From contig CDRNVI010000005.1 in assembly GCA_977017575.1 (NCBI GenBank), positions 62,001-126,000 of the forward strand: a stretch of DNA of 64,000 nucleotides. Reading direction: 5' to 3'. The stretch is from Paramoeba atlantica (Eukaryota > Protista > Discosea). Position numbers and translations under genes: made by a program. A model generated the notes under the pieces. The model ran no database searches and was not told the origin of the DNA. It was given only the letters and a program-made list of their open reading frames with translations. This document shows, one piece after another, positions 5,515-61,963 of the stretch (its first letter is position 1; every line of letters begins with the position of its first letter).

Positions 5515-5549
5515 TTTAACGATAAAGATACAGTTTCTGTACCTTGTTG
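5515..5549 (+). other. Spliced-leader exon sequence (nt 5-39) at the 5' end of element A3
   Basis: TTTAACGATAAAGATACAGTTTCTGTACCTTGTTG; the ACAGTTTCTGTAC core and terminal TTG fall at the same positions as in the 39-nt trypanosomatid SL. Confidence 0.85.
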
Positions 5550-5588
5550 AATTTTTTACGTAGTATTCTCTCGGGGCCCAGCTCTTTT

Positions 5589-8500
5589 ATGACGCAAACC
5601 AATACTCCTCAGAGCCCCGCACGCTCGAACGAGGACCACCCCTCATTCCATATGAGTGCAAAGGAAGGAACTCTCAGCGTAGGCGCTCTCGCCGACGAAG
5701 AACGTGCGCACTCTCTCGGCAGTTGGGACCAATTCCAAGGAAACAAGCATTTGATTCGCGCTGTCAGCACATACGACGAACAACTCTACACTACACCAAT
5801 CCCGGCGAATATTCCTAAGGAATGGTTGGAACGCGCACGTCACATCTCCCAGGAAAAGGAAACCCCAGACACGGGCCACGTAGAGGCCGAAGACGAGGAG
5901 ATGCAGCACTGTGGAGTGAGAAGGCAGAAAATTACTCACGAGGCTACACCCACATCAAAGATCCCCGATGAAGCTCGGACGCTCAAATCCGCAGTGAAGG
6001 ATGCTCTTTCCCACCAAGGTCGAAACACTTCCCCATCGAAAGGAGTGACCAAAGCGGACTCGCGCTCGTCAAGGCGAACACCGGAGCCCCGGACATATTT
6101 CTCTTCACCGCGACACGCCGCAAACCAAAATAACTTCGCTGAAAAGACACAAACAAGAGAAGAGACTCGGGAATGTCCGGCCATGGGATGCACTTGGAGA
6201 AGTCTGCCGCACGGAGGGTCTTGGCAAGCGTTTTATAACCACGTCGCGTGTCGCCACGGAAACGGAGTTCCCGCTACCTGGTGGGATGCAGAAGGCCGAT
6301 TTCTTTGCAACTTATGCGGGCGCCATTATGACATCAACAAAAGGGAAGCTCATCCACAAGCCTGCAAAGGGAACGTTGCGAACCCCCAAATCCCATCGCG
6401 CGCAGCACACTCGAGCGACCCAAGCCACCTTCCGGGGACTCAAACTCATCACTCTGAACTTCCCTCGCTATCCTCTATCTGCACGCTGCGCCTGAACACT
6501 TGCAAGGACGTGCCTCCACGTTGCCGTCAACTGTGGGGAGAAATTATCACCAAAGCAGCCCAAAACGCAGTCACCGAAAACTCTACAGCCGCGTAGACCC
6601 TATTCGCCATGCTCCCCAAGTGCTTACTACCCGCCCCACACCGAGGAGGACGTAAGAACCACACAACTTACGCATCATACGTCCAGAAGTGCATGAACCG
6701 ATGGCTCGCGCAAGATTATGTCTCCCTATGGAATGAAGCAGTAGACAACGCACTCAAGAAACAATCTGTAGCCCCTACAACCGTTCACGACGAAGAGGAA
6801 AAGGCAGCTATCCGAGCAGAGCTTCTAGCTCGACAAGGCGAGTACTCTAGGGGTATGGCTGCACTCACGGCGGATGCTATGGCGCCTGACGACGAAGATA
6901 CACTCCTCAAACTTCAGAGCAAGCACCCGCCCCGACATCCAGACAGTGACATCATCGACTATACGCCTCCGCCCACAGCGCCCCCAATAATGGATGAACC
7001 CGTGGTAGCGAAAACTATCAAGAGCTTTCACCGGGGTTCCTCGTCCGGAACCATGGGTTTACGACCCGAGCACTTGCAAGCTGTACTCCTGGCGCACGTA
7101 GATAACACCGTGAAACCCCTTACTGCCCTTAAAAACCTCGTGAATCATCTACTAGCCGGGAAAGCACCCCTAGAGGTACAACCATATTTTGCGGGAGCCA
7201 GACTTTGCGCGCTTGAAAAGGGCGAAAATGACGTCCGCCCCATAGCAGCGGGAGAAACGATACGTCGATTGGTAAGCAAAGCGGCTTGCAATGCAGTGAG
7301 GAGCAAAGCCAGGGAATTTTTTAAGGGACTACAGTTCGGCGTCGCGACACCGGCCGGTTCGGAACGAATAATTCACACTTGCCGGCACGCAATGACAATT
7401 CATACGGACAACCCCGACATGGTATTATGTAAAGTCGACCTAAGCAACGCATTCAACAACGTTAGCAGAGCAACTTTCTTGAAACTTGTAGGCGATCATT
7501 TTCCGGAATTGTTCCCCTGGGCTAGCTGGTGCTATACGACAACTAGTGCTTTGACCTATCGTGACCACACACTCCTTTCGGATGAAGGCGTCCAACAGGG
7601 CGATCCCCTGGGACCACTTTTCTTTTCACTGGTCTCCTTGGAATTTGCAAAAGAAATCTATCACCAGGCCGACCTGGACTTGCAGCTATGGTACCTAGAC
7701 GACGGGATTCTCATTGGCAGGGCAGAAGACGTCAGGAATTCGTTGGATACAATCGCCAGAGTAGGTCCGCGATGGGGCCTATATCTGAACATGTCCAAGT
7801 GCGAAATAATCACCCCCCCTGCCTCGGCTAACGTTGTAACCATATTTCCGGACATACCCGATGCCAAAATAAACGTGTGCGGTAACTTTAGTGTCCTAGG
7901 AAGCCCAATTGGGTCCCCTGAGTACTGTACTGAATATCTGCTGACACACGCGGTTGAGCCCGCCGAAATGGCCCTTGATGCCATAACCAGAATCCGGGAC
8001 CCCCAGGTAGCCATGGCGCTAATTCGACAATGTGCTGGATTCTGCAAATTGGTACATGCTCTACGAACGACGCCCCCGCAATCAGTTATGAACCTCTGCA
8101 AGCGGCTCGACGACTTCCTAATGCACGCGGTCGAATCCACTCTATGTCCTTTGCCTCCCTCCGCACGCGCCCAAATTCAGCGCTTGAAAAGACACGGAGG
8201 TTTCGGTTTAAAATCGGCGACCGTGCACGCATCCTCCGCTTACGCCTCCTCTGTAGTTTTCGCGGCGGCCACGGACTCATGGGATGCTTCAGAAGTGGAG
8301 GGCTTTCTACAATCGATTGAAGACGTGAATTCGAAAGTTGGTATCAGTCTACTCGACTCAAACGGACTCGTGCGTTCCATCCCGCGCCATAAATGTGAAG
8401 AACTCTCCCCCAAAGCTCGCTTCACCAAGAGATCTCGCGAGGGAGAAACCAGACATCCCTTTGAACCCGCAAATCCGCCTTCTCTTCCTCGTGACCGCGC

Positions 8501-9455
8501 ATTGCCTCATTCCGAAGACTTTCTACACGATACAAACCCCCTTTACGCATCCGAAGATTGCGTTGACGCGGAGCCACCCGACTGGGCAAGTAATAGCGTC
8601 CCCCGCCAAAAAGACATAAGTTACGCGATCTCTGCCACAGAGTTCTCGCACGCATATGAAAACGCCGACGCCCGGACTCGCGCACGCTGGGCTTCTCAGT
8701 GTGGTAAAGGAGCAAGCAGCTGGGCGTTCGTAACTCCTTCCAGAGACACGGGCCACGCCTTTAACCCCACAGAATTCCGCATCCTATCCCGCTGGTGGTT
8801 AGGTGTGCCCGTGTACGGGGAAGAAGGTACATGTCCCAAGGGGAACTGCACACTCCCATTGGACATACACGGCGATCACGCTCTCACATGCAAGCACGGG
8901 GACGGTATCATCGGCCGTCACAACGCCTTGGCCGATCACTTTGCCGATACTTGCAGTAACGCACGCCTAGCTCCCCAACGGGAAAAAAGCCTCGGGAACC
9001 GGGGCCCCGGAGGCGCTCTGACTAGACCCGGGGACGTCTTCCTTCCGAGTCTCTTCCTCGGGAAACCTATCGTGCTTGACTTCGCGGTCACTCACGCCCA
9101 GCAATCTAAATACACGGACACAGTCCGAAATGCTAGCTGGGTGGCCGCGGGATCCTTCGCAGAGCATTATGCCTCAGAGCAGAAAGTCCGACAACGCCGT
9201 GAATCTGAAGATGCCGGAAGCGACTTCACAGCTATTGTGGTCGAGAGCTATGGCTCTTGGAGTGCCAGTGCTTTAGCCGTTCTCCGGAAGGTTGGAGAAC
9301 GAAGGGCAAAAGCGTCCAACGGTATCTTGACAGACGAGGCCTCTACGCTCCGTCTCGTGACCGACATGAACGTAACATTGATGCGTTGCCAGGCACGCAT
9401 GATGATTACGCGCCTGCCGGCTGTGGACCCTTTGCCCCCTTTAATCGAGCAATAG
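5589..9455 (+). mobile_element. Full-length CRE family A element A3 ORF (LsmAD-like, 2 Zn fingers, RT, CCHC, RLE) with in-frame TAG at 6594-6596
   Basis: ORFs 5544-6596 and 6609-9455 are in frame; the TAG replaces the conserved W of AWTL. RT motifs QFGVA, KVDLSNAFN, GVQQGDPLGP, WYLDDG; RLE RPGD..VLDFAVTH. Confidence 0.93.
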
Positions 9456-10873: not shown

Positions 10874-10908
10874 TTTAACGATAAAGATACAGTTTCTGTA
10901 CCTTGTTG
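10874..10908 (+). other. Spliced-leader sequence (nt 5-39) at the 5' end of A3 duplicate
   Basis: Identical to 5515-5549. Confidence 0.85.
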
Positions 10909-10947
10909 AATTTTTTACGTAGTATTCTCTCGGGGCCCAGCTCTTTT

Positions 10948-13900
10948 ATGACGCAAACCAATACTCCTCAGAGCCCCGCACGCTCGAACGAGGACCACCC
11001 CTCATTCCATATGAGTGCAAAGGAAGGAACTCTCAGCGTAGGCGCTCTCGCCGACGAAGAACGTGCGCACTCTCTCGGCAGTTGGGACCAATTCCAAGGA
11101 AACAAGCATTTGATTCGCGCTGTCAGCACATACGACGAACAACTCTACATTACACCAATCCCGGCGAATATTCCTAAGGAATGGTTGGAACGCGCACGTC
11201 ACATCTCCCAGGAAAAGGAAACCCCAGACACGGGCCACGTAGAGGCCGAAGACGAGGAGATGCAGCACTGTGGAGTGAGAAGGCAGAAAATTACTCACGA
11301 GGCTACACCCACATCAAAGATCCCCGATGAAGCTCGGACGCTCAAATCCGCAGTGAAGGATGCTCTTTCCCACCAAGGTCGAAACACTTCCCCATCGAAA
11401 GGAGTGACCAAAGCGGACTCGCGCTCGTCAAGGCGAACACCGGAGCCCCGGACATATTTCTCTTCACCGCGACACGCCGCAAACCAAAATAACTTCGCTG
11501 AAAAGACACAAACAAGAGAAGAGACTCGGGAATGTCCGGCCATGGGATGCACTTGGAGAAGTTTGCCGCACGGAGGGTCTTGGCAAGCGTTTTATAACCA
11601 CGTCGCGTGTCGCCACGGAAACGGAGTTCCCGCTACCTGGTGGGATGCAGAAGGCCGATTTCTTTGCAACTTATGCGGGCGCCATTATGACATCAACAAA
11701 AGGGAAGCTCATCCACAAGCCTGCAAAGGGAACGTTGCGAACCCCCAAATCCCATCGCGCGCAGCACACTCGAGCGACCCAAGCCACCTTCCGGGGACTC
11801 AAACTCATCACTCTGAACTTCCCTCGCTATCCTCTATCTGCACGCTGCGCCTGAACACTTGCAAGGACGTGCCTCCACGTTGCCGTCAACTGTGGGGAGA
11901 AATTATCACCAAAGCAGCCCAAAACGCAGTCACCGAAAACTCTACAGCCGCGTAGACCCTATTCGCCATGCTCCCCAAGTGCTTACTACCCGCCCCACAC
12001 CGAGGAGGACGTAAGAACCACACAACTTACGCATCATACGTCCAGAAGTGCATGAACCGATGGCTCGCGCAAGATTATGTCTCCCTATGGAATGAAGCAG
12101 TAGACAACGCACTCAAGAAACAATCTGTAGCCCCTACAACCGTTCACGACGAAGAGGAAAAGGCAGCTATCCGAGCAGAGCTTCTAGCTCGACAAGGCGA
12201 GTACTCTAGGGGTATGGCTGCACTCACGGCGGATGCTATGGCGCCTGACGACGAAGATACACTCCTCAAACTTCAGAGCAAGCACCCGCCCCGACATCCA
12301 GACAGTGACATCATCGACTATACGCCTCCGCCCACAGCGCCCCCAATAATGGATGAACCCGTGGTAGCGAAAACTATCAAGAGCTTTCACCGGGGTTCCT
12401 CGTCCGGAACCATGGGTTTACGACCCAAGCACTTGCAAGCTGTACTCCTGGCGCACGTAGATAACACCGTGAAACCCCTTACTGCCCTTAAAAACCTCGT
12501 GAATCATCTACTAGCCGGGAAAGCACCCCTAGAGGTACAACCATATTTTGCGGGAGCCAGACTTTGCGCGCTTGAAAAGGGCGAAAATGACGTCCGCCCC
12601 ATAGCAGCGGGAGAAACGATACGTCGATTGGTAAGCAAAGCGGCTTGCAATGCAGTGAGGAGCAAAGCCAGGGAATTTTTTAAGGGACTACAGTTCGGCG
12701 TCGCGACACCGGCCGGTTCGGAACGAATAATTCACACTTGCCGGCACGCAATGACAATTCATACGGACAACCCCGACATGGTATTATGTAAAGTCGACCT
12801 AAGCAACGCATTCAACAACGTTAGCAGAGCAACTTTCTTGAAACTTGTAGGCGATCATTTTCCGGAATTGTTCCCCTGGGCTAGCTGGTGCTATACGACA
12901 ACTAGTGCTTTGACCTATCGTGACCACACACTCCTTTCGGATGAAGGCGTCCAACAGGGCGATCCCCTGGGACCACTTTTCTTTTCACTGGTCTCCTTGG
13001 AACTTGCAAAAGAAATCTATCACCAGGCCGACCTGGACTTGCAGCTATGGTACCTAGACGACGGGATTCTCATTGGCAGGGCAGAAGACGTCAGGAATTC
13101 GTTGGATACAATCGCCAGAGTAGGTCCGCGATGGGGCCTATATCTGAACATGTCCAAGTGCGAAATAATCACCCCCCCTGCCTCGGCTAACGTTGTAACC
13201 ATATTTCCGGACATACCCGACGCCAAAATAAACGTGTGCGGTAACTTTAGTGTCCTAGGAAGCCCAATTGGGTCCCCTGAGTACTGTACTGAATATCTGC
13301 TGACACACGCGGTTGAGCCCGCCGAAATGGCCCTTGATGCCATAACCAGAATCCGGGACCCCCAGGTAGCCATGGCGCTAATTCGACAATGTGCTGGATT
13401 CTGCAAATTGGTACATGCTCTACGAACGACGCCCCCGCAATCAGTTATGAACCTCTGCAAGCGGCTCGACGACTTCCTAATGCACGCGGTCGAATCCACT
13501 CTATGTCCTTTGCCTCCCTCCGCACGCGCCCAAATTCAGCGCTTGAAAAGACACGGAGGTTTCGGTTTAAAATCGGCGACCGTGCACGCATCCTCCGCTT
13601 ACGCCTCCTCTGTAGTTTTCGCGGCGGCCACGGACTCATGGGATGCTTCAGAAGTGGAGGGCTTTCTACAATCGATTGAAGACGTGAATTCGAAAGTTGG
13701 TATCAGTCTACTCGACTCAAACGGACTCGTGCGTTCCATCCCGCGCCATAAATGTGAAGAACTCTCCCCCAAAGCTCGCTTCACCAAGAGATCTCGCGAG
13801 GGAGAAACCAGACATCCCTTTGAACCCGCAAATCCGCCTTCTCTTCCTCGTGACCGCGCATTGCCTCATTCCGAAGACTTTCTACACGATACAAACCCCC

Positions 13901-14814
13901 TTTACGCATCCGAAGATTGCGTTGACGCGGAGCCACCCGACTGGGCAAGTAATAGCGTCCCCCGCCAAAAAGACATAAGTTACGCGATCTCTGCCACAGA
14001 GTTCTCGCACGCATATGAAAACGCCGACGCCCGGACTCGCGCACGCTGGGCTTCTCAGTGTGGTAAAGGAGCAAGCAGCTGGGCGTTCGTAACTCCTTCC
14101 AGAGACACGGGCCACGCCTTTAACCCCACAGAATTCCGCATCCTATCCCGCTGGTGGTTAGGTGTGCCCGTGTACGGGGAAGAAGGTACATGTCCCAAGG
14201 GGAACTGCACACTCCCATTGGACATACACGGCGATCACGCTCTCACATGCAAGCACGGGGACGGTATCATCGGCCGTCACAACGCCTTGGCCGATCACTT
14301 TGCCGATACTTGCAGTAACGCACGCCTAGCTCCCCAACGGGAAAAAAGCCTCGGGAACCGGGGCCCCGGAGGCGCTCTGACTAGACCCGGGGACGTCTTC
14401 CTTCCGAGTCTCTTCCTCGGGAAACCTATCGTGCTTGACTTCGCGGTCACTCACGCCCAGCAATCTAAATACACGGACACAGTCCGAAATGCTAGCTGGG
14501 TGGCCGCGGGATCCTTCGCAGAGCATTATGCCTCAGAGCAGAAAGTCCGACAACGCCGTGAATCTGAAGATGCCGGAAGCGACTTCACAGCTATTGTGGT
14601 CGAGAGCTATGGCTCTTGGAGTGCCAGTGCTTTAGCCGTTCTCCGGAAGGTTGGAGAACGAAGGGCAAAAGCGTCCAACGGTATCTTGACAGACGAGGCC
14701 TCTACGCTCCGTCTCGTGACCGACATGAACGTAACATTGATGCGTTGCCAGGCACGCATGATGATTACGCGCCTGCCGGCTGTGGACCCTTTGCCCCCTT
14801 TAATCGAGCAATAG
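10948..14814 (+). mobile_element. Near-identical duplicate of A3 (offset 5359), same in-frame TAG at 11953-11955
   Basis: Proteins differ at only a few residues (T/I, E/K, F/L). Confidence 0.93.
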
Positions 14815-17343: not shown

Positions 17344-20300
17344 TTACTCTTCTTTGCCATACCCCACAAGTGCAGGGCCTGTGTTCGCCGAGGGGAGGCG
17401 AAGAACGAGCATACGCGCCTGGGAGCGCATGAGGGTGACGTTCAGACTTGTTAGTATTTGCTGTAACGCCCCCCCTTGCGAAAGTGTTCCACCTGTCGCA
17501 GCTTGGCCTTTCGAGACTTCCCGCAAGACCGACATAGCGGCCGGACTCCAGCATCCGTATGTTTCGACAGCCATAGCTGTGAACTTGGTCTTCGCTTCTT
17601 CAGCTTCCTCCCGTTGCTTCCGCTTGTGTTCGACGGCGTACCTCTCGGCGAATGACCCGGCTGCCACCATGTTAGCATCACGGACCAGGTCCGTATACTT
17701 TTGTTGCTGAACATGTGTGACAGCGAAATCAAGGACGAGGGCCTGACCGAGACCACCGTTCCGGACATAGACATCTGCGGGTCGCGTGAGGGCGCCGCCC
17801 GGACCCCTGTTTCCCAGAGAGACTTCTCTCTGTGGGCTCAACCCGGCCTTGCTGCATTCAGCGGAGAACTGTTCCGCTAGGGCGTTGTGCCTTGTAATGA
17901 TTCCGTGGCCGCACTTGCAGGCTAGCGCATGGTCCCCCCCAGGGCCGAGTGGGAGGCGACAATTCGGAATCGGGCAGTTGTGACCTTGAGGGTATATACT
18001 CTCCCCGAGCCACCAACGAATCAGAGTCCGAAATTCAGTAGGGGTGTAGGCATGACCGCAGAGAGTTGAGGGAACCGTGAAGGCCCAGTTGGATGCCCCG
18101 TCGCCCGTTTGTGAGAGCCACCTAGCCCGAGTGCGGGGATCCGCTCTTGCGTAATCTTCCTCAAAGTCTCTCGCTGAAATCGCATGACTGAGATCGCGTT
18201 GTCGAGGAATCGCCAAATCTTGAGAAAGGTCAATATCGGGGGAGGGCGAGAAGGGGCATCTCTTTATGACGGAGTCCTTGTGGATTTTCCCGGTAGATTT
18301 GTCCACCATACACCCCCCTACACGCCGGTTAATGTCCTCCACGGCGTAAGAAAAGCCCTCAGCCTCATTTGCATCCCATCGATCCTTGTCGGAAGCGAAA
18401 GCTACTGAAGCTACGTACGCTGAGGTGGCATGCATTTCCGCTGAGCGAAGGCCGAGACCGCCGAACTGTTTATTTCTTTGTGCTTGTCGTCGAGCCATGT
18501 CACTCAGTGGGCGACAAAACGTTTCAACCGTACGCTGAACGGCGTTGTCGAGTCTGCGACATAAGTCCAGTAGTTCGTCCGTCGGCGTCGTGCGAAGGGA
18601 GTAAACCATCTGGCAAAACCCTGTGCACTGTCGGATGAGAGAGAAAGCGACCTGAGGGTCCTCCAGTTTCTCGATCGCTTCAAGGGATTCCTCCGCCTGG
18701 GAAATCGCGCTGTCGAGGAGGAACTGACGGCTGTACGTCGTAGATCCGATGGGGCTTTCCAAGATGCTCAGATTACCTTCCATGTTGATGTTGAGCCCGG
18801 GAATGTCAGGAAAGTGGGTAGTTTGATGAGATGAGGAAGGGTGTGTGATTATTTCGCACTTGGACGGATTGAGGTTCAGACCCCACTTTGGCCCTCCAAT
18901 TTCGATGATATCTAGTGCGTGACGTACATCAGAAGCCTGGCCTGCAAGGACGCCATCATCAAGGTACCAGAGATTGAGATGAAGATCAGGAGCTCCGGCC
19001 TTAAGTTCTGCGGCCATTTCTCTCATGACGAGCGAGAACAAAAGGGGTCCGAGCGGGTCTCCTTGTTGTACGCCTTCAGAGGATTGAACTACACGTGCGC
19101 CGAATGTCAGGTTACTGTCCGAACTGTAGCACCATTCCACGAACGGGCTCAACTCAGGGAAATGATGCCGCGTCAAGGCCATAAAGCTATTTCTTGAAAT
19201 GTGATTGAAAGCGTTGCGAAGGTCAACCTTGCATAGCACAAAATCCTCGTTATTGATGTGGTGCGCAACCAGGCGCCTGCAAATGTGGATAACACGTTCG
19301 GCTCCTGCGGGCGTCGCCACTCCATATTGTTGATCTTTGAAGAGCGTTCTGGATTTAGCCTTTGCAGACAGACATCCTATCTTGCTCGCTAGTCGGCGGA
19401 AGGTTTCCCCTGCGGCAATGGGGCGGACATCACCCTGACCCTTGTGTAAGGCACATAAGCGTCCGCCGGCGAAGCAGTGTTGGACTTCAAGTGGTACTTT
19501 GCCCGCTAGCATATGACTAATAAGTTTCGTGAGCGTACCGAGCGGATCTGTCCTGGCGTCGTGATGGAATTGCACTGCTACTTGTAGGTGCTCAGGCCGA
19601 AGTCCGAGAGCTCCCCCTGAGGAACCGCGGTGAAAGCTGGAAAGCGCCGTAATGATGTCCTCTTCGGTTGCGGTGATCGGTTTAATATCGAAATCCAGTT
19701 CGTGCTTTCACGTACATTAACAAAGAATATGAAAAGATATATTAAGAAGAAATAGAACTGGAAATAGAACATAACGAAAATTCATTGAAATCGTCATACA
19801 TGTAGATCAGTTTCTCAAAGAGTACAAGTCTCATCACATCAGCACAGTTTGAAACAATATTCCGGAATTCCATAATCAAAGTAACTTGTGAACGGGAAGA
19901 CCCATCCCCTCAGCTCGCAGCCAACCAACCCTGCGAAAACGAGTGAAGCTTTACCCAAATAGAATAGTCACTAATACAGTCACATAAGAATAAAATCAAT
20001 TTCACGCGAAAATGCATACAGTTCATACACGTACATAATTATTAACAAACCCTATTCAAATATAATCCCTCCTGAATTTCAATCCGTAAACTTTTACAAA
20101 GAAGGCGTGGTAATCGGACTTGGACCCAGAAGTCGAGACGGGTGTTTCGCCTGGAGCTTTTGATAAGTCGTGTCATCGTTTGGGGCAAGTGGTTCGGATG
20201 TCAACGCAGTCATTGCGCGGGAAAGTTCACCATCTCGCACGAGGCGTACTGCTCGGAGCGCAGCTTTCTGATCCTCCTCTTCAATGCTCTGAGCCTGTGG

Positions 20301-21764
20301 AGAACTTTTCCGCTTACGCTTCAGGCTTGACAAGGCCTCGTTCCAAAGTGGTAGAAATTCCTTGTTCTTCCATCTGGAAAGGCATTTGCGGACGTGGGAG
20401 GCGTATGAGGCTTTACCCTTGTCCCCGCCGCGTCGTGGTGCTGGAATTACACATTTAGGTAACATAGCCAGCAGGGTCCAAGCCTCGATGGTGTTGTCAC
20501 GTACGGCCGCCGCCATGCATTCGGTAAGTGTTTTCGCCCATTCAGGCTTACAGCTGTTTGGGATATTTTTGCAGGTATTGACGGACAAGGCGCATACTGA
20601 TGATAGGGACGGCAGATCTTCCACTGTTGGGGCGCCTTGCATAGTGTTCTCGCTAAGCTGCTGCTCAGGGTGGTGCTCAGTAACGGAATTTGGGGGCGGG
20701 ACGGGGTAATCTTTGGAGCCAGCGGAGTAACCATGCGAAGGTTTGGGTGACGGCGTGCGAAACCTGCAGTGCATCTTGTGTGTTGCTTGCTTGCGCATGG
20801 AGTAGTGCTTTTTGCAACCCGGGCATAGGAATCTTCCCTCCTCTGTCCACCATGATTCCGCCACTTCTTCCCCATGTCTGTTAGCCACGTGGTTGTAAAA
20901 GGCTTGCCATTGATCGCCGTGCGGCCCTGTTTCCCAGGTACATGAATCCAAGGGGCATTTCCTGGGCCGACTTGGTGTGCTAATAATGGGGGCGGGCGTG
21001 CTTTTAGATGACTCGGCGTTTCGGGAGGTTAATGGGCGTCGGTGTCGCTTGAGACTTACTGAAGTGTCCGCATGGGGCTTTGTGTCCGGTTTTTTCGGAG
21101 ATGATGCCGCAGACAGATTGCTGTCACTTTCAGCCTCAGGAGTGTATGGCCTAGGGGAGTTGGAACTTGATTGTGCGGTGTCACGGTCGTCGCTGTCGGC
21201 CCCGGACTCAGCACACAATTGGGAAAGGGAGATGCTCTTGGGTCGCTTCTTCTTTTTCCGTCCTTTTCCGCATCCATTCACAGACACAGTAAGGTCTTCA
21301 GGAGTGAGATCGGGGAAGAGCAATTTATCTTTTTCGTAATTATATTCGTTGTCGTATGACCTCCGGATATGTCGTTCGCACCTCTCCTTCACAGCCTTAT
21401 TTGTGGTTTTTGATAGGCTGAGTGAAGAAGATTCTGCTCCCGCAAACTGGAATTCGAAGTCCTCAGTTGGACGGACGCTGGAGAAAAGTTCCTCTTCCGT
21501 GCTTGTCTGCTGTTGCCCTGTATCTGGGGTCTCACCTTCCACAGAGTTCGTAATGCTGAGTGCAATCTCGTCCGCTCGCCGTAAAGATTCAGCTGAAGGA
21601 TTAGGTGGGAGGGGTGTAGTGTATAAGTCTACATGGTACGTACTCTTGCCTTCAACAAGGTCCTTGTTTGCGTCGAATTGGTCCCAGCAGCCGAGTGTGT
21701 GTGCTTTCACCTCGCGCTCGAAGTTCGAGACCTGCTTCGCCTTAGATCGAGTTAAAACAACCAT
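17344..21764 (-). mobile_element. Full-length CRE family A element A4; ORF open (1337 aa) once the insertion at 19690-20096 is removed
   Basis: MVVLTRSKAK start, LsmAD-like motif, Zn fingers; TTG|GAT joins in frame to DIKPITATEED..FHRGSSGG; complete RT and RLE motifs. Confidence 0.9.
19690..20096 (-). mobile_element. TSD-less non-autonomous insertion (family X), 407 bp
   Basis: Left end TAAAAGTTTACG-N4-GAAATT and right end GGATTTC match the other family X copies; removal restores the host ORF. Confidence 0.75.
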
Positions 21765-21800
21765 GGGGCGTAAGAGTGAGATAAAGAAAAGAAAATAATT

Positions 21801-21839
21801 CAACAAGGTACAGAAACTGTATCTTTATCGTTAAAGATT
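21801..21839 (-). other. Complete 39-nt spliced leader at the 5' end of A4, preceded by a partial SL stutter
   Basis: Reverse complement of AATCTTTAACGATAAAGATACAGTTTCTGTACCTTGTTG; an extra AATCTTTAACGATAAAG lies at about 21845-21861. Confidence 0.88.
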
Positions 21840-53255: not shown

Positions 53256-53597
53256 CCTCCAAACCCCAGGATCCCGTCCGCTTTTTTTTTTTTTTTTTTT
53301 TTAACAAGCAATCAAATTAGCAATTTCATATTTTGGAGCCCAAAACTAGCAATTCGATCTCCCGTAAGTATAAGAACAATAAAAACAATAACAATAAAAA
53401 CAAGCAATCTATGCCCAAGCAAACCCGAAACGAGCAAACCTCAACCTGCCACCTCTCTCACTACCCCGGACCTTATTGCCCGCAGGACCGTCCGACGCTG
53501 GCCACAACCCCCCTGCAGAACCAGGAACCAAGCAAAGCAACCACGACACTTACCGCCCCACCCTTGCCCACGAGGTTTTCCACCTCTTGGCCGCTTG

Positions 53598-56500
53598 CTA
53601 CTCTTCCTTCCCGTACCCCAGGAGAGCCAGGTCGGGGCCCGTTGCGGGTAATCGCAAGACTAGCATTCGGGCCTGCGACCTCATCAGTGTTACATTCAGA
53701 GCTGTGAGAATCTGATGTAAGGCCGCCCCCTTCGATATGTCACTGCCCGATTTAGCCGCCCTAGCTACTGCGACCTCTCGGAGAACAGACATTGCGCTGG
53801 GACACCACGAGCCGTAGGATTCTACGACCATAGCTCCGAACTTAAAGTGTGCTGCAGTCGCCTCTGCGCGTTGCATGCTCTTGTTCACGGTGGCATATTG
53901 TTCCGCGAACGACCCCGCCGTCACCCAGTTAGCGTCACGGACTGTGTCCGTATACTTTTGTTGCTGGACATGGGTGACAGCGAAGTCGAGTACAAGGGAC
54001 CGACCGAGGTGGCTGTCTATAAAGACATCTGCAGGCCTAGTGAGGGTGCCCCCCGGACCCTTGTTTCCCAGGCTGACCTCTCGTTTGGGGGCGAGCCCGG
54101 CCTTGGAACACTCCGCCGCAAACTGTGTTGCCAGAGCATTGTGTCGGGAAATGATACCATGCCCGCTTTTGCACGACATCGCGTGATCCCCCTCTGGACC
54201 AAGCGGCTGCGTGCATTTGTCCATGGGGCAAGGTCGGGTGCCGGGGTATATGTTCTCCCCAAGCCACCAGCGTACCAGCATCCGGAACTCTGTCGGGGTA
54301 TATGCGTGACCGTTCTTCTTGGAAGGCAAAACAAATGCCCACTCCGACGCTCCTTCCCCCGTTTCAGAGATCCATCGGGCCCTCGTCCGCGGGTCAGCGG
54401 TATTAAGCGCGTTGTTGTATTCCTGGGAAGAGATCGAGTGACTGAGATCCCGTTGTCTGGGAACTACCGCTTCATTTCTAGATTCGCTCGCTTCGATAGT
54501 ACTAAAGAGGGAACGATCTGACACAACCATGCTCTTGGGTATTGTGCCATTTTCGCCGTCTACCAGATTTAGTCCAGCGCGATTGTTGACATCGCTCACT
54601 GCTTCTTCGAAACCTTTCGCTTCGGTGGGGGCCCAGCCATCCTTCCTTGATGCGAATGCCACGGAGGCCACGTAAGCAGAAGAGGAATGTTCCTCTGCTG
54701 AACGGAGCCCTAGCCCTCCGAAGCGCTTGTCTCGTTGTGTCTGTCGCCGGGCGTCATCGCCAAGTGGGTGGAAAAAGTTTTCGAGAGTGGACTGAACAGT
54801 GTCGTCCAGGCGTCGACAAATATCTTGCAGTGCAGATGTCGGGGTGGTACGGAGAGAGTAGACCATCTTGCAGAAGCCTGTACAATGCCGGATGAGGGAG
54901 AGAGCGATCTGGGGATCCTCGAGCAAAGTTATAGCGGTTAGGGAATCTTGGGCCAGTTCGAAGGCATTGTCCAAATGGAATTTATGACAGTATTCAGTGG
55001 ATCCGACTGGGCTACCTAAAATGTTGAAATTACCCTCTAAATTTTTATTCGGGCCAGGGATGTCAGGGAAAACGGAGGCGCGAGGAGATGATGAGGGGTG
55101 TAAGGCGAGTTCACATTTAGCGGCGTTGATATGGAGTCCCCGTTGTGGTCCTTTGATTTCCAGCACGTCGAATGCGTGCCGCACATCAGCAGATGATCCA
55201 GCCAGCACCCCGTCGTCCAGATACCACAGATTCAAATCGAGCATTGGGGCTACTGCGTGAATTTCCGCCGCTACTTCTCTCAGAACCAGGGAAAAAAGGA
55301 GAGGACCTAAGGGGTCGCCTTGTTGCACTCCTTCAGAAGACGGAATGGTGCGTGTTCCGAAAGTAAGTAGGCTGTCCGAAGAGTAACACCAATCTACGTA
55401 GTGACTGAGAGCGGGAAAGTGTTCGCGAGTAAGGGCAATGATCCAGTCCCGTGAGACATGGTTAAATGCGTTTTTCAGGTCAATTTTGCATAGAATGAAG
55501 TCATTGTCATCAACGTGAGAATCGAATGTCTGTCTGCATCGATGGATGACGCGCTCAGACCCTGCTGGAGTGGCCACACCGTATTGGTGTCCTTTGAAGA
55601 GCTTACGAGCTGTTGTTTTGGCGGAGAGACAGGCGACTTTGCTCACCAGGCGACGGAGCGTCTCTCCGGCCGCTATTGGCCGCACGTCGCGCTCCCCTTT
55701 CTTTAACGCGCATAAGCGGCCTCCAGCGAAATAGCACTGAACTTCGAGCGGCACTTGCCCCGCGAGCATGTGGTTCGTAAAGTCGGTCAGTGTACCCAAT
55801 GGATCCGTACGGCCGTCATGGTGGTACTCTAGTGCCACTTGTACGTGTTCAGGGCGTAGCCCAAAAGCGCCACCCGATGACCCCCGGTGAAAAGTTGCAA
55901 GAGCCTGCGTTACGTCTTCCTCTGTGGCTCGAAGTGGTTTTGGTCCCATTTCCGTCGAAGAACTGAGGGGTTTCACCGACGTAGCGAGTCGGGATGGATG
56001 CTTAGCTTGGAGTTTAGTGTAAGTATCATCGTCATACGGGGCTACTGGTTCAGAGGTTAGGGCAGCCATAGCTCGAGATAGTTCCGAGTCGCGAACGAGT
56101 CTTTCAGCTCGCATAGCAGATTTGGTTATCTCGTCCTCCGGACTCTGTGCTTGTGCGACGCGTTTTTTGTGTTGTAGGCTCGCAATTGTTTCGTTCCAAA
56201 GGGGGAGAAATTCTTTCCGTGACCACCGGGCGAGACACTTCCGAACGTGCGAGGCGTACGATAGTTTTGCCCTGCTCCCCCCACGATGAGGTGCCGGTAG
56301 TACGCATTTCGGTAGCATGGCGAGAAGAGTCCAGGCCTCAACTGTATTGTCTCGTACAGCGGAAGAGAGACACTCACAGAAGACTTTCGCCCACCCCTGG
56401 CGACAGCTGTTGGGAATGTCTTTGCATGTGTTGAGAGGTGTCGAACAGATTGACGCCAGGGAGGGAAGGGGTTCGGCGACGGCTTGTGCGGCAAAAAATG

Positions 56501-57587
56501 CAGGGTTGTCCCTCGGGTCGCCCCCTGTCTGTGTAGGTTCGGAGATAGGTGGGGGAGAAGAGCAGCGGAAAGCGCAGTTTTCGGCATGGGTGACCTGTTT
56601 GCTTAGGTTGTAGTGCCTGTTGCAATCCCTGCATCGGAAACGTCCCTCCTCGTTCCACCAGGTATCAGGCACCTCGTCCCCGTGTCTGTGGGATGCGTGG
56701 TTATAAAAGGATTGCCATTGGCCCCCGTGAGGCACAGTTTGCCATGCACATCCCTGAGAAGGACATTTCCGCGTGTTTCCATTGACTGTAGGTGGCTTTT
56801 CTGGAGTGGTATTGGGGGGTTGATTGAGCCTTTCGGTATCTGAGGAATCGCGTGGCCCTGGTTTCGACACCTGCACGTGACGTTTACGCTTACCCGTGGG
56901 GGTGTTAGTGTTCTGTTCCTTTTGGGACAATTTGATAGACGGGCTGTCCATGACTCCGGTGGCATGAGTGCGTGGCCCGGGTGAATTCGCGCTGGACTCT
57001 ATATTGTCGCGTTCCTCGCTGTCGGCCCCGGACACTGCATCCAGCTGAGAAAGATTGATGCCCTTCGGGCGTTTCTTCTTTTTACGGCCTTTACTGCTAC
57101 CCTTTACTGAGAAGCGAAGATCAGGAGGCGTGAGATCAGGAAAAACTAGCCTGTTATCAGCATAGTCATATTCGGCACAGCCTACCCTGCGGTTATGGCG
57201 CTCGTACTTCTCCTTCACAGCCTTGCTAGAGGACTTTAATTGGCTGAGTGAAGAGGAATTGGCTCCTTCGAATTGGAACTCGAGGCTTTCCGTCGGGCGG
57301 ACACTGGAGAACAGTTCTTCTTCGGTGGTAGCATTCTGGTGTCCTGTGTCTGGCGTTTCGCCTTCTGTAGAGTTCTTAATGTCGCAGGCAATCTTGTCAG
57401 CGCGCTCCAATAATTCAGATGAGGGATCAGGTGGAAGTGGCGTGGTATAAAGACTCTCCTCGAATGTACTCACCCCTTCGACTAGATCTTTATTGGCTTC
57501 AAATTGATCCCAAGAGCCAAGTTTGTGCGCGCTAACTTCGTGCTGGAAGTCGGTACCCTGCTTAGCTTTGGACCGGGTTGTCACCAT
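53598..57587 (-). CDS. Intact full-length family A retrotransposon protein A7 (1329 aa): LsmAD-like, basic patch, 2 Zn fingers, RT, CCHC, RLE
   Basis: Uninterrupted ORF from MVTTRSKAK with all RT and RLE motifs. Confidence 0.95.
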   Translation of the reverse strand: MVTTRSKAKQGTDFQHEVSAHKLGSWDQFEANKDLVEGVSTFEESLYTTPLPPDPSSELLERADKIACDIKNSTEGETPDTGHQNATTEEELFSSVRPTESLEFQFEGANSSSLSQLKSSSKAVKEKYERHNRRVGCAEYDYADNRLVFPDLTPPDLRFSVKGSSKGRKKKKRPKGINLSQLDAVSGADSEERDNIESSANSPGPRTHATGVMDSPSIKLSQKEQNTNTPTGKRKRHVQVSKPGPRDSSDTERLNQPPNTTPEKPPTVNGNTRKCPSQGCAWQTVPHGGQWQSFYNHASHRHGDEVPDTWWNEEGRFRCRDCNRHYNLSKQVTHAENCAFRCSSPPPISEPTQTGGDPRDNPAFFAAQAVAEPLPSLASICSTPLNTCKDIPNSCRQGWAKVFCECLSSAVRDNTVEAWTLLAMLPKCVLPAPHRGGSRAKLSYASHVRKCLARWSRKEFLPLWNETIASLQHKKRVAQAQSPEDEITKSAMRAERLVRDSELSRAMAALTSEPVAPYDDDTYTKLQAKHPSRLATSVKPLSSSTEMGPKPLRATEEDVTQALATFHRGSSGGAFGLRPEHVQVALEYHHDGRTDPLGTLTDFTNHMLAGQVPLEVQCYFAGGRLCALKKGERDVRPIAAGETLRRLVSKVACLSAKTTARKLFKGHQYGVATPAGSERVIHRCRQTFDSHVDDNDFILCKIDLKNAFNHVSRDWIIALTREHFPALSHYVDWCYSSDSLLTFGTRTIPSSEGVQQGDPLGPLLFSLVLREVAAEIHAVAPMLDLNLWYLDDGVLAGSSADVRHAFDVLEIKGPQRGLHINAAKCELALHPSSSPRASVFPDIPGPNKNLEGNFNILGSPVGSTEYCHKFHLDNAFELAQDSLTAITLLEDPQIALSLIRHCTGFCKMVYSLRTTPTSALQDICRRLDDTVQSTLENFFHPLGDDARRQTQRDKRFGGLGLRSAEEHSSSAYVASVAFASRKDGWAPTEAKGFEEAVSDVNNRAGLNLVDGENGTIPKSMVVSDRSLFSTIEASESRNEAVVPRQRDLSHSISSQEYNNALNTADPRTRARWISETGEGASEWAFVLPSKKNGHAYTPTEFRMLVRWWLGENIYPGTRPCPMDKCTQPLGPEGDHAMSCKSGHGIISRHNALATQFAAECSKAGLAPKREVSLGNKGPGGTLTRPADVFIDSHLGRSLVLDFAVTHVQQQKYTDTVRDANWVTAGSFAEQYATVNKSMQRAEATAAHFKFGAMVVESYGSWCPSAMSVLREVAVARAAKSGSDISKGAALHQILTALNVTLMRSQARMLVLRLPATGPDLALLGYGKEE

Positions 57588-57620
57588 AGGGCGTAAGGAT
57601 GATATAAAGGGAAAAGAAAT

Positions 57621-57656
57621 CAACAAGGTACAGAAACTGTATCTTTATCGTTAAAG
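57621..57656 (-). other. Spliced leader (nt 4-39) at the 5' end of A7
   Basis: Exact match, preceded by an A-tract. Confidence 0.87.
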
Positions 57657-57919
57657 GTTTTTTTTTTATTTTTTTATTTTTACGAGTTGAAAACAAGCAA
57701 TCAAATTAGCAATTTGAAAATTTAACTTTTTTTTTTTTTACTAAAAACTAGCAAACAATTCTACCCGAAATCCACCCCTAATCAAATCACTCCCGCACCA
57801 AAACTAAGACCCGTGACGGCACGTCGGTTAGTGACTTGGTACCCCCCCTTGCCCCCCCCCCTTTCGCAGAGAAACACCCTCCACCCCCCTGCGGCTGTTA
57901 AATGATTGGGGGGACCGAA

Positions 57920-60900
57920 TTACTCATCGTTCCCATATCCAAGGAGGGCCGTGTCAGGGACCGCCGCGGGAAGTCGGAGTACCAGCATCCGATCCTGTGT
58001 CCGCATCAGAGTGATGTTAAGTGAGGTCACCAATTGGTGTAAGGCTTCCCCGTTCGAAAGGGTACCCCCGGAGTATGCCGCACGAGAGACGGAAACCTCC
58101 TTGAGGATCGCAAAGGCGCTTGGACTCCACGCTCCATAAGATTCCACGACCATCGCTCCAAATCGATGGCGTGCAAACTCTGCTTCCTCTCTTTGCTTCT
58201 TTTTGTTTTCGGTGGCGTATCGTTCCGCAAAAGACCCCGCCGTCACCCAGTTAGCATCACGGACTAAGTCCGTATACTTTGGTTGCTGAACATGAGTGAC
58301 GGCGAAGTCTAATACAAGAGACTGGCCTAGCCCGATTGTAGGGATGAACACGTCTCCGGGCCTGGTGAGGGCGCCCCCAGGACCCTTGTTGCCCAGACTC
58401 ACTTCTCTCCGCGGGGTGAAACCGGCCTTTTTACATTCAGAAGTAAACTGTGCCGCTAGTGCGTTGTGGCGTCCGATTATACCATGCCCGCTTTTGCACC
58501 CCAGAGCGTGGTCACCCTCGGGATCTAGCGGTAGCGTGCATTTTTCCATAGGACAAGGCCGGGACGCTGGATAGATTGGGTCCCCTAGCCACCAGCGTGT
58601 GAGGGTGCGAAACTCCGTCGGTGTGAAAGCCAGACCGGTTTTCTTGGAGGGGATCACGAAAGCCCATGCTGAGGCTCCTTCTCCTGTTTCTGATATCCAC
58701 CTGGCCCGTGTGCGAAGGTCAGCTTTCACAAATGCCTCGTTAAATTCCTGGTTGGCGATGGCGTGGCTAAGGTCGCGTTGTCGGGGAATCACCAGTTCTG
58801 TTCCGGATTCCTGCGCGTCGGTATACGGAGAATCAGTCGCCAAAGCCATACTTTTCGGAATTTTGCCGCCTTGTTGGACCACCGTCTTTCCGGCACGCCT
58901 GTTCACCTCCCGCACGGCATGGTCAAAGCCCTCAGCGTCCGCTGGGTACCAACGGTCTTTGTCCGTTGAGAAAGCTACGGAGGCAACGTAAGCCGCACTC
59001 GAATGTTCCCCCGCCGACCGAAGGCCCAACCCCCCGTACCGCTTTTCGCGTTGCGCCTGGCGTCGCGCCCTATCACTCAAAGGACGGAAGAAGTGTTCAA
59101 TAGTGCGCTGGACGGCATCATCTAAGCGTTGGCAGATATCTTGAAGTTCCGTTGTCGGGGTAGTCCTGAGCGAGTAAACCATTTTACAGAAACCAGTACA
59201 GTGGCGTATGAGGGAAAGGGCCACCTGGGGATCTTCAAGTGTAGCTATGGCCTCGAGAGATTCCTCTGCCATGTCGATTGTGTTCTTGAGAAAGAATTCG
59301 CGGCAAAATTCTGTCGAACCAATTGGACTCCCCAAAATGTGAAAATTTCCTGCCGAATTCGTGTTCAGACCGGGGATGTCAGGGAAAAGTGAGCAACGAT
59401 GGGAGGAAGCTGGGTGTGTTGCGATCTCGCACTTGGCCACGTTGATATGCAATCCCCATTTCGGGCCGGACATCGCGATCACGTCCAGTGCGTGCCGAAC
59501 GTCGCAGGATGGACCGGCGAGTATCCCGTCGTCTAAGTACCACAGGTTTAAAGCGAGTTTCGGAGCGGCAGTGTGGATTTGTAGGGAAACTTCTTTCATC
59601 ACAAGCGAAAAGAGCAGAGGGCCCAGGGGGTCGCCTTGTTGCACCCCTTCAGATGATTCGATAAAGCGTGAGCCAAAGGTCAGAATGCTTTGAGTGTTGT
59701 AACACCACTCCACGTACGCACCCAGCTCAGGGAAATGCTGGCGTGTTAGGGCCACAAAGAAATCCCGTGAGACGTTATTGAAAGCGTTTTTGAGGTCGAC
59801 TTTGCATAGCAGGAAGTCGTCATCCTCAATATGTTCGGCGAAGGTCTTCCGACAGAGGTGGATGATGCGCTCGGCTCCAGCAGGTGTGGCTACGCCGTAC
59901 TGGTGCTCTCTGAAGAGTTTTCGGGCCTTGAATTTTGCGGAGAGGCAGGCAACTTTGCTTGCCAAGCGGCGAAGGGTTTCTCCGGCAGCAATTGGACGAA
60001 CATCGTGTTCACCCTTTTTCAGGGCGCATAACCGACCACCCGCAAAATAATGTTTGACCTCCAACGGTGCTTTTCCTGCGAGCAAGTGATTGGTAAACTT
60101 CGTAAGCGTGCCCAGAGGATCGGTGTACGCGTCGTGATGGTACTGCATCGCGGCCTGAACGTGCTCCGGCCGCATACCGAAGGCCCCTCCCGAGGACCCT
60201 CGGTGGAAAGTCGCTAGGGCCTCGGCTACTTCGTCTTCCGTTGCTTCAAGCGGTTTTGCTTCCGGCGCTGAAGGGCTTGCCACGTTGAAAGTGCTGTCAA
60301 GTCTCTGAGGATGCTTTGCCTGGAGCTTCGAGTAGGTGGCGTCGTCGTCAGGGGCAAGTGGTTCCGAAGTTAATGCTGTCATGGCGCGGGAGAGCTCCGC
60401 GTCGCGGACAAGCCGTTCTGCCCGTAAAGCCGCTTTCTTTACTTCTTCGTCTATGGTAAGCGCTTGTGGTACATTTTTCTTTTTGCGTGATACACTCGAG
60501 ACAGCTTCTTTCCAAAGCGCCAGGAAATCTTTGTTGGACCATCTCGCGAGGCACTTCTTTACATGGGAGGCGTAAGAGGCTTTTGCGCGGTTACCTCCGC
60601 GATGAGGGGCGGGTAGGACGCATTTGGGCAGCATGGCGAGGAGTGTCCATGCCTCGAGCGTGTTCTCTCTCGCTGCTGTGGATAAGCAACAGCAGAGTGC
60701 TTTAGCCCATTCTTGTCGGCAACTGTTGGGGATGTCCTTGCAAGTGTTAATAAGTAGCGCACTGATAGAGGATAAACTCGGAAGGGGTGTGTCGGAGACT
60801 TTCACGTTTTCGCTTACTACGCTTTGATGAGAGGGTGTGGAAGGAGAGTTAAGGGAAGGCAGAGCATTCGAGTCCACATTGGGGCTTAGAACAGGATCGG

Positions 60901-61963
60901 CACTGCTCGTCTAGGGCGACGGACGGCTTTGAGGAGAGGAATGGCGGAACATGCAGATCTTGTCGTGGGTTTCCCGTTTGCCTTGATCATAATGTTTATT
61001 GCAATCATGACACCTAAAACGTCCTTCGTCTTTCCACCACTCGTCTGGGACCTCATCACCGTGTCTGTTTGCTACGTGGTTGTGGAATGCCTGCCATTGG
61101 CCCCCGTGGGGCCCTGTTTTCCAAGCACATCCCTCGAAGGGACATTTTCGCGTATTTTCATGCGTGGTGTGTGTTTTTTCTATCGCACAGTTTTGGGTTG
61201 GGGTCGGTTCGGGGGCATTGTTCATTGTTTCAGCTTTGGGGGCGTCAGGGGAGGTAGTTTTCGACACCTGCTGGGGACGTTTACGTTTGCCTACAGCCGT
61301 TTTCGGGGTTAACTTCTTCAGGGGTGATTCAGCCGGAGAGCTGTGAACACTTGTTGACGCATCTGTGGAGTCACGGTCATCACTGTCGCCCCCAGACTCG
61401 GTGCATAACTGGGTATGTAGCTGGGAAAGTGAGATCCCTTTAGGGCGCTTTTTCTTTTTCCTTACTTTGGTTCCACCGCTCAACGAAAAGTCGAGGTCTT
61501 GAGGCGTCAGGTCGGGGAAAATTAATTTGTCGTCGTCATAATTGTATTCGGTACGAGCGATCCCCCGGTTGTGGCGCTCGCATTTCTCCTTCACAGCCTT
61601 GTTTGTAGATTTCGATTGGCTGAGTGAAGAAGGAGCGGCCCCTTCGAACTGGAAAACGGAATTCTCGGTGGGACGGACGCTGGAAAATAATTCTTCTTCC
61701 GAGCTCGTTTGCTGACGCCCTGTGTCTGGTGTCACGCCTTCGATGGAGTTCGTAATGCTGAGGGCAATGTCTTCGGCCCGTTGTTCTAATTCTGATGAAG
61801 GATCCGGCGGAAGTGGTGTCGTGTACAGCTCTTCCTTGTATGTGCTAGCGCCTTTAACCAGGTCTTTGTTTGCCTGAAACTGGTCCCATGAACCGAGCTT
61901 GTGCGCGCCCGCTTCGCGATCAAAGTTGGATTCCTGTTTTGCTTTAGAGCGAGTTAGAACCAT
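57920..61963 (-). mobile_element. Full-length family A element A8 with one in-frame TAG at 60911-60913
   Basis: ORFs 60911-61963 and 57920-60877 share a frame (33-nt gap with no other stop); all motifs present. Confidence 0.92.

Follow-up and report, generated by a model that had tools for sequence, protein, structure and literature searches.

An N-terminal LsmAD domain, most likely of host origin, in RLE-type non-LTR retrotransposons of a Paramoeba atlantica assembly

Why would the protein of a mobile element begin with a part of a host factor of mRNA metabolism? This question was raised by a 64,000-nucleotide stretch of contig CDRNVI010000005.1 of the Paramoeba atlantica assembly GCA_977017575.1 (hereafter, the window), which contains five copies of non-long-terminal-repeat (non-LTR) retrotransposons, designated A1, A2, A3, B and the duplicate of B. 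A preliminary description of this DNA had reported that proteins at five sites shared a motif, had likened that motif to LsmAD, a domain found in Ataxin-2/Pbp1, and had described the flanking sequence as low-complexity and poorly conserved. Translation confirmed the motif WDQF..N..L....ST(Y/F)...LYTTP(L/I)P in all five copies: on the minus strand at 57378-57527, 61754-61903 and 21552-21701, and on the plus strand at 5709-5858 and, in a near-duplicate, at 11068-11217. In each window copy, the block containing the motif was located 20-60 residues past the first ATG of a retrotransposon open reading frame (ORF). An alignment of six divergent families revealed an N-terminal block of some 80 conserved residues. 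Behind this block, the linker was indeed low-complexity, indel-rich and poorly conserved, and conserved zinc-finger and pre-reverse-transcriptase (pre-RT) regions came next.

To identify the block, the translations were compared with the Pfam LsmAD profile (PF06741), the gathering cut-off of which is 25 bits. Copies A1 and A2 scored 33.2 and 31.2 bits (E 7e-8 and 3e-7), and the remaining window copies scored 22-27 bits with partial coverage. In an 80-residue alignment of the element block with the Pbp1 of the host and the canonical homologue P0290, all of the LsmAD motifs were colinear; the C-terminal motif EE.(L/x)(F/H)S.V reads DEERLFSGVERP in host Pbp1 and TEEELFSSVRP in the element. A language-model search of the ESM Atlas with the first 110 residues returned as the nearest cluster one annotated "LsmAD domain-containing protein" (0.92, 196 shared features). 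In the shape search of the same resource, the top two rows were clusters containing LsmAD and SM-ATX, with weak template-modelling (TM) scores of 0.41 and 0.34. No solved LsmAD structure was found by sequence search with host Pbp1 or with the LsmAD alignment.

It may be asked whether this likeness arose by chance or by convergence on a short motif, with no homology behind it. The domain is short and partly disordered, and the shape matches were below TM 0.5. In addition, the AlphaFold2 model of the isolated 80-residue domain of copy A1 consisted of short helices predicted with moderate confidence (predicted local distance difference test, pLDDT, 69.7); this moderate confidence is consistent with the published observation that the isolated LSmAD of human Ataxin-2 is poorly folded (PMC11898529). 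Because the window copies are homologous, their number provides no independent evidence against chance. A chance likeness was nevertheless judged to be extremely improbable because the Pfam score exceeded the cut-off and because matches above the cut-off were found throughout the genome. It is further contradicted by the four colinear motifs over 80 residues, which include lineage-specific residues common to host Pbp1, by the independent match in the language-model search, and by the tree of LsmAD domains presented below, which agrees with homology. By sequence comparison, the N-terminal block is thus a true LsmAD domain of Ataxin-2/Pbp1, as the preliminary description had proposed.

When all six frames of the 45.7 Mb genome were searched with the Pfam LsmAD profile, at least 85 matches exceeded the cut-off. 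Nearly all of these were N-terminal in retrotransposon ORFs of approximately 1300-1480 codons, and about 29 occupied open frames that extend over 1300 codons or more. The two strongest matches corresponded to the two haplotype copies of the host Pbp1/Ataxin-2 gene. Like Pbp1, the host genes DHH1 and L019 (described below) and other DEAD-box genes were observed as near-identical pairs on different contigs. The assembly probably holds two haplotypes, and the element copy counts may therefore be inflated up to twofold. Every full-length family examined retained the LsmAD block. Candidates for LsmAD-less sister families on contigs C55 and C39 proved to be 5'-rearranged or 5'-truncated copies. At the C55 locus (L076, G000:C55:289500-296800), no fewer than five rearranged copies stand in tandem; each has a piece of the C-terminal region fused upstream of its zinc fingers, where it replaces LsmAD and the linker.

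No match to SM-ATX (LSm, PF14438) was detected in any element protein examined by Pfam, and a simple pattern scan of copy A1, which is a weak test, did not find a PAM2 motif. Because SM-ATX is missing and only 20-60 residues precede LsmAD, the elements are best regarded as carriers of an LsmAD domain that fall outside the Ataxin-2 family.

Selection on the domain was then evaluated. In the 46-codon LsmAD core, synonymous sites were saturated between families, and the ratio of nonsynonymous to synonymous divergence (dN/dS) was 0.06-0.29 where computable. The dN of the LsmAD block (0.14-0.50) was equal to that of the zinc-finger (0.15-0.53) and pre-RT (0.12-0.56) regions. In contrast, the dN of the linker was 0.44-1.68, and the linker and spacer evolved 2-4 times faster than the block. 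For the moderately diverged L021/L024 pair, omega was 0.08 for LsmAD, 0.36 for the linker, 0.10 for the zinc fingers and 0.11 for the pre-RT region. These values support purifying selection on the LsmAD block, contradict neutral evolution and agree with the earlier suggestion that the retrotransposons had retained the domain. Since synonymous sites were saturated, conservation of the block as a nucleic-acid signal is disfavoured. In principle, the block could be a neutral passenger or relic without a role in the life cycle of the element. However, its amino acids were kept across families despite the saturation of synonymous sites, its dN matched the zinc-finger and pre-RT values and was 2-4 times below that of the adjoining linker, and it was present in every full-length family examined, copies without it being 5'-truncated or rearranged; a passenger role is accordingly very improbable. 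It can be stated with high confidence that the block is a real, host-derived LsmAD domain under selection.

The origin of the domain was studied by comparison with the host gene. Host Pbp1 is a protein of 994 residues with SM-ATX and LsmAD, the latter scoring 48.5 bits, and the best database match of its LSm-LsmAD region was an element protein with 63% identity. A maximum likelihood tree of 29 LsmADs was constructed, in which the canonical set comprised metagenome loci and P0290, from unrelated eukaryotes. The canonical LsmADs were split from host Pbp1 and all of the element LsmADs with support of 99/98. The element LsmADs, including that of the host gene L019, formed one group (87/85) with host Pbp1 as its sister, as expected if the domain had been captured from the host, which the preliminary description had suggested. 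Two features of this tree limit its weight as evidence for capture from Pbp1: it rests on about 86 columns, and other kinetoplastid PBP1 sequences were left out of it. The PBP1 sequences of Bodo, Trypanosoma and Perkinsela were compared by eye from the supplement of PMC12898128. The signature TT(P/S)IP.N after LYTT is common to the elements and host Pbp1, and both have HL(V/I)RG where canonical LsmADs have (K/Q)xFG(V/I). Perkinsela PBP1 reads YTTPIPQN, whereas Bodo and Trypanosoma PBP1 have the canonical TTxLDK (PMC12898128). Most likely, a single transfer from Pbp1 of the host lineage brought LsmAD into the elements, and the LSm domain usually found ahead of it was left behind. One capture followed by deep radiation appears to be the most economical reading, and it is strongly supported that, in this kinetoplastid-like host, the LsmAD-bearing elements have diversified into a dozen families or more.

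One host gene complicates this conclusion. L019 (L019:1965-3047:-; G000:C48:75506 region) is a single-copy host gene for a protein of 360 residues, in which an unrecognised N-terminal part of 270 residues precedes a C-terminal LsmAD; it adjoins a gene for a NIF-type phosphatase and has a second haplotype copy on C90. In the tree, its LsmAD fell among those of the elements with support of 80/64 and had a long branch. L019 could therefore have been the donor instead of Pbp1, or it could derive from an element and represent a domesticated element fragment. The same placement would fit reverse or mixed transfer, in which the retrotransposons supplied host Pbp1 with its unusual LsmAD signature, or L019 with its LsmAD. 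Such transfer is improbable, since LsmAD beside SM-ATX is the universal Ataxin-2 architecture and is present in host Pbp1. In addition, the TTPIPQN signature is also found in Perkinsela PBP1, which indicates that the signature belongs to the host lineage. Reverse transfer into host Pbp1 is thus unlikely, L019 may have either donated or received its domain, and capture from the Pbp1 gene is retained here as the preferred origin.

A further LsmAD was observed on another contig (L015:2800-3600:-; G000:C163). It is of the canonical Ataxin-2 type (WDQFSANKELFGV ... NVHLQEERG ... EEDLYSGV), very unlike that of host Pbp1 on C44, and is split by two apparent T-rich introns. This locus is either a second paralogue or part of a contig from another organism.

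The structure of the whole element was determined from copy A1, the best-preserved copy in the window (Table 1). Its ORF is followed by a 3' untranslated region (UTR) of about 290 nt and then by an A-run, and it was colinear with that of the relative P0020 from the zinc fingers through the restriction-like endonuclease (RLE). The Cys/His columns of the zinc fingers were invariant in the six-family alignment. The CCHC motif and the RPADV.../LDFAV motifs were read from the translation of copy A1 and were kept in P0020. By analogy with R2, CRE and NeSL elements, the motifs RPADVFI and LDFAVTH, typical of such enzymes, were assigned to the restriction-like endonuclease, and no other nuclease domain was found beside the RT in a Pfam scan of the element proteins. 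The best PDB matches of the RT were the R2 proteins 8gh6 and 8ibw. Given the RVT_1 score of 63 bits, the lack of another nuclease domain, the downstream CCHC/RLE motifs and the nearest PDB structures, the elements were assigned to the RLE-type non-LTR retrotransposons (R2/CRE/NeSL/R4/HERO group). The narrower label "CRE" given in the preliminary description was not confirmed: the best 120 relatives included no trypanosomatid protein, and so none of SLACS, CZAR and CRE. An apparent division into ORF1 and ORF2 was not upheld. In two window families, it results from a single in-frame TAG between parts that share one reading frame, and their relatives L024 and L026 are uninterrupted; the native form of the element is therefore read as one long ORF.

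Table 1. Positions of the retrotransposon copies and their parts in the window
Feature	Position	Strand	Remarks
Whole element, copy A1	53281..57655	-	spliced-leader-like head, single ORF, 3' UTR, poly(A) tail
Spliced-leader core, copy A1	57620-57643	-	
A-run, copy A1	about 53281-53302	-	
1329-codon uninterrupted ORF from first ATG, copy A1	53598..57587	-	ATG 57587, stop 53598; LsmAD, linker, zinc fingers, RT, CCHC, RLE
LsmAD domain (80 aa), copy A1	57291..57530	-	PF06741 33.2 bits, aa 53-110 of frame
Cys/His zinc-finger region, copy A1	56568..56768	-	CP..GC.W....HG..W..F.NH...RHG ... RC..C..HY......H...C
Reverse transcriptase domain, copy A1	55101..55703	-	Pfam RVT_1 63 bits
C-terminal CCHC and presumed RLE motifs, copy A1	53958..54245	-	RHN., RPADVFI, LDFAVTH
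Coding region, copy A2	57920..61963	-	single in-frame TAG; listed ORFs 60911-61963 and 57920-60877
LsmAD domain, copy A2	61667..61906	-	Pfam 31.2 bits
Frame, copy A3	20094-21806	-	ends before RT; RT piece at 17344-19575
LsmAD domain, copy A3	21465..21704	-	
Coding region, copy B	5544-9455	+	one in-frame TAG at 6594-6596
LsmAD domain, copy B	5706..5945	+	
Coding region, duplicate of copy B	10903-14814	+	
LsmAD domain, near-identical duplicate of copy B	11065..11304	+	

The fast-evolving linker contains a lysine-rich patch. In the stretch corresponding to window positions 56900-57050 on the minus strand (alignment columns 240-275), a FPDLTP.(D/E)L motif persists in several families. The lysine-rich patch, GRKKKK.PK, is found in the same stretch in several families and resembles a nuclear localisation signal.

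A spliced-leader (SL)-like head was found just ahead of the element ORFs. Copies often lie behind the poly(A) of another copy or behind partial SL repeats, a pattern compatible both with the copying of trans-spliced mRNA and with insertion targeted to SL-like sequence. Copies were also arranged head to tail, the poly(A) of one copy being directly followed by the SL-like head of the next (window positions 57656-57700; upstream of L024, L026 and L030), and some SL-like heads were preceded by partial or inverted SL repeats. The head-to-tail arrangement suggests insertion at SL-like sequence or template switching, beyond copying of trans-spliced mRNA.

The distribution of the LsmAD-bearing elements was investigated by a profile search with the pre-RT half of the protein, which yielded 4452 relatives, the best 150 of which were inspected. 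Among 290 fetched relatives, 30 element proteins contained LsmAD; in addition, the canonical Pbp1 homologue P0290 was fetched with the host query. All 30 were from ENA, and those checked were traced to assembly ERZ24900291 of the same organism; one of the proteins, P0003, was 100% identical to G000:C54. Foreign relatives from a sponge, cnidarian-labelled clusters and metagenomes showed 30-40% identity over the whole RT-RLE part, and LsmAD was absent from those examined among the fetched proteins. In a metagenome scan with the narrow pattern G[SC]WDQFx[GA]N, 12 loci were recovered; each looked like an ordinary Ataxin-2 gene, and none had an RT. As far as this narrow-pattern scan and the best 150 of the 4452 profile hits reach, the LsmAD-bearing elements appear to be confined to this organism.

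The closest foreign relatives were L075:529-5661 (JGI metagenome 3300050212), P0020 and P0015, with approximately 40% identity and colinearity from the zinc fingers to the RLE. P0020 and P0015 were found to carry an MLLE domain (PF00658, 47-49 bits), a part of poly(A)-binding protein (PABP), C-terminal to the RLE; no report of a long interspersed nuclear element (LINE) with MLLE was found. An N-terminal Prim-Pol domain (PF09250, 24-27 bits, barely over the cut-off) was detected in P0013 and P0029 (Logan and JGI metagenomes). P0193, from the same ENA assembly, represents a related RT family of this organism with RNase H (PF00075, 50.6 bits) downstream of the RT.

The searchable literature contained no paper that links LsmAD or other Ataxin-2 domains with retrotransposon proteins, in agreement with the preliminary statement that no LINE was known to carry LsmAD, and no LsmAD was reported there for SLACS, CZAR or CRE-clade elements. 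A 2026 catalogue of Ataxin-2 "chimerisms" mentions neither reverse transcriptase nor transposons in its text and 14 supplementary files (PMC12898128).

Because LsmAD is under selection in a protein without LSm, PAM2 and the disordered tail, the domain is expected to have a function of its own. The LSmAD of human Ataxin-2 does not bind RNA alone (PMC11898529); given this, together with the poor folding of the isolated domain, docking is its likeliest role. It is rather probable that the element LsmAD serves as a docking module into the messenger ribonucleoprotein (mRNP) machinery of the host, that is, the PABP-Pbp1-DHH1 network. The preliminary description had suggested a part in routing the RNP or engaging the poly(A) machinery, a role that gains indirect support from the MLLE of the sister elements and from the complex prediction described below. 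This idea is favoured by the apparent copying of SL-capped polyadenylated mRNA by the elements, as judged by their SL heads and poly(A) tails, by the acquisition of MLLE from the same network by sister elements, and by parallels with other retrotransposons: yeast Ty elements depend on Dhh1, Pat1 and Lsm1, and the L1 protein ORF1p associates with PABPC1. In the proposed mechanism, LsmAD would link a conserved mRNP factor of the host to the freshly synthesised element protein while the latter remains on the trans-spliced, polyadenylated mRNA that encodes it, and this docking would help the element RNA to pass from translation to a retrotransposition-competent RNP. The best candidate for this factor would be the P-body helicase DHH1/DDX6.

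The host DHH1/DDX6 gene was identified at L055:1330-2553:+ (E 5e-173 to yeast Dhh1), and complex formation between its RecA2 domain and the 80-residue element LsmAD was modelled. The prediction scored 0.70 versus 0.00 for the best control, a mark attained for 51 of the 78 solved complexes and for 2 of the 108 mismatched pairs, and at least 68% of contacts were common to the runs. The predicted peptide interface comprised residues 2, 4-5, 7, 9-10, 12-13, 16-19 and 21-23. Ten of these 15 residues are invariant or near-invariant, although the alignment was not used in the prediction. On DHH1, the predicted interface 281-323 corresponds to residues 293-335 of yeast Dhh1 (gapless offset +12) and overlaps patch 3. 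In yeast, patch 3 of Dhh1 RecA2 (Asn294, Leu298) is the docking site of the Pat1 and Edc3 helices (PMC3783180). According to the model, the invariant W-D-Q-F..N..L..S-T-(Y/F) helix would sit on the RecA2 surface overlapping this patch.

Several points count against this explanation and against DHH1 as the partner. In the complex model, the pLDDT of the partner was only 52-57. The complex test measures model confidence, its calibration does not extend to peptides or disordered chains, and its score may reflect likeness to DDX6-peptide complexes already solved. The predicted site differs from the FDF pocket (patch 1) that had been expected, and the idea that WDQF..N..L(F) mimics the FDF motif of LSM14/EDC3, which fills the FDF pocket of DDX6, was rejected. 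The predicted interface overlaps patch 3 and not patch 1, the Pfam FDF profile had no match in the genome, control genomes being silent as well, and a PDB profile search with the LsmAD alignment retrieved no FDF peptide. The element was found in no RNA run searched, its presence being confirmed by contigs of DNA-like runs from one study. Finally, human LSmAD (185-317) alone did not co-precipitate DDX6, whereas the human LSm domain did so in an RNA-dependent manner (PMC11254730). DHH1 is therefore regarded, on the basis of the modelled complex, as a tentative partner that is less likely than not to be the true one. The fuller proposal, in which LsmAD is an autonomous peptide docking to RecA2 patch 3 of DHH1/DDX6 and the RLE lineage repeatedly took parts of the PABP-Ataxin-2 system for moving its own polyadenylated mRNA into the retrotransposition RNP, is more doubtful still.

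Alternatively, the domain may be real and selected with a partner other than DHH1. The element protein could mimic Pbp1 toward another LsmAD ligand, or it could bind the LSm domain of Pbp1 in trans; in either version, the PABP-Pbp1 complexes on poly(A) tails would gain the element as a member or as a competitor. The human LSmAD assists folding and RNA binding of the adjoining LSm domain (PMC11898529), and this, together with its failure to co-precipitate DDX6 noted above, favours such a partner. So does the MLLE of the sister elements, a PABP domain that binds the PAM2 of Ataxin-2/Pbp1, from which it may be supposed that the clade repeatedly acquires parts of the PABP-Pbp1 axis. However, we know of no LsmAD-specific ligand, and the LsmAD of Pbp1 itself, being in cis, should have the advantage over a trans copy in binding the Pbp1 LSm domain. 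LSM12 was rejected as a partner since it binds the LSm domain and not LsmAD (PMC11166328). A search of the genome with Pfam AD (PF09793) gave no LSM12 match and was uninformative. Mkt1 binds a distant region of Pbp1 (PMC12345631), and for the targeting of mRNA in flies, LsmAD is neither required nor sufficient (PMC7946432). A partner other than DHH1 is thus a serious possibility, though not the expected outcome. Docking of a host-derived LsmAD into the host mRNP machinery is, as a whole, considered the best explanation and has a somewhat better than even chance of being correct.

LsmAD is highly conserved from protists to humans, and it is both the most conserved and the functionally least understood part of Ataxin-2. 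In the elements, it occurs in every full-length family examined of a large radiation, apparently a recent one, with constraint equal to that of the core domains. Its retention there without LSm, PAM2 and disordered tails suggests that the domain by itself performs a function visible to selection. The 80-residue element LsmAD could serve as a natural bait in a search for LsmAD partners, for which the DHH1 prediction provides a first concrete test. If docking to DHH1 is true, the element would represent a natural "minimal construct" showing what LsmAD does. The elements would also be a new case of a mobile element that uses host mRNA-metabolism machinery via a captured part, with the MLLE of the sister elements as a parallel. 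Host-domain capture itself is known: non-LTR retrotransposons have picked up RNase H, proteases, PHD fingers and RRMs, and the NeSL-type elements with a C48/Ulp1 protease offer a comparable appended host domain. As far as the searches reach, LsmAD is a new accessory module for non-LTR retrotransposons.

Compared with the LsmAD of Ataxin-2, Pbp1 and kinetoplastid PBP1, the element domain has the same WDQF..N and ST(Y/F).E.LYTT motifs, RA..IA helix, H-containing motif and EE..(Y/F/H)S.V, and it is closest to the Pbp1 copy of its own host. It differs from Ataxin-2/Pbp1 in that it stands alone at the N-terminus, without SM-ATX, PAM2 (by the simple scan) or the long disordered tail. With the peptides of Pat1, Edc3, LSM14 and 4E-T that bind DDX6/Dhh1, it shares a short helical sequence with aromatic and Asn residues and a predicted docking to RecA2, but its predicted site is outside the FDF pocket, and no FDF sequence match was obtained by Pfam or PDB profile.

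As for the rest of the protein, the plan of N-terminal DNA-binding fingers, RT, CCHC and RLE is the same as that of the R2 proteins (PDB 8gh6, 8ibw, 9nl2); however, the match to these is weak and covers the RT core only (E 3e-6), and R2 has no LsmAD. SLACS, CZAR, CRE1 and CRE2 similarly have a Euglenozoan host, an association with the SL, N-terminal Cys/His fingers, an RT, and a C-terminal CCHC and RLE. In contrast to the CRE-clade elements, which lie inside SL-RNA genes, here a full SL precedes each dispersed copy. The sister elements with MLLE, Prim-Pol or RNase H have the same backbone, at approximately 40% identity, with one host-derived module added at an end. In those with MLLE, this module is C-terminal, after the RLE, whereas LsmAD is N-terminal; both modules come from the PABP-Ataxin-2 network.

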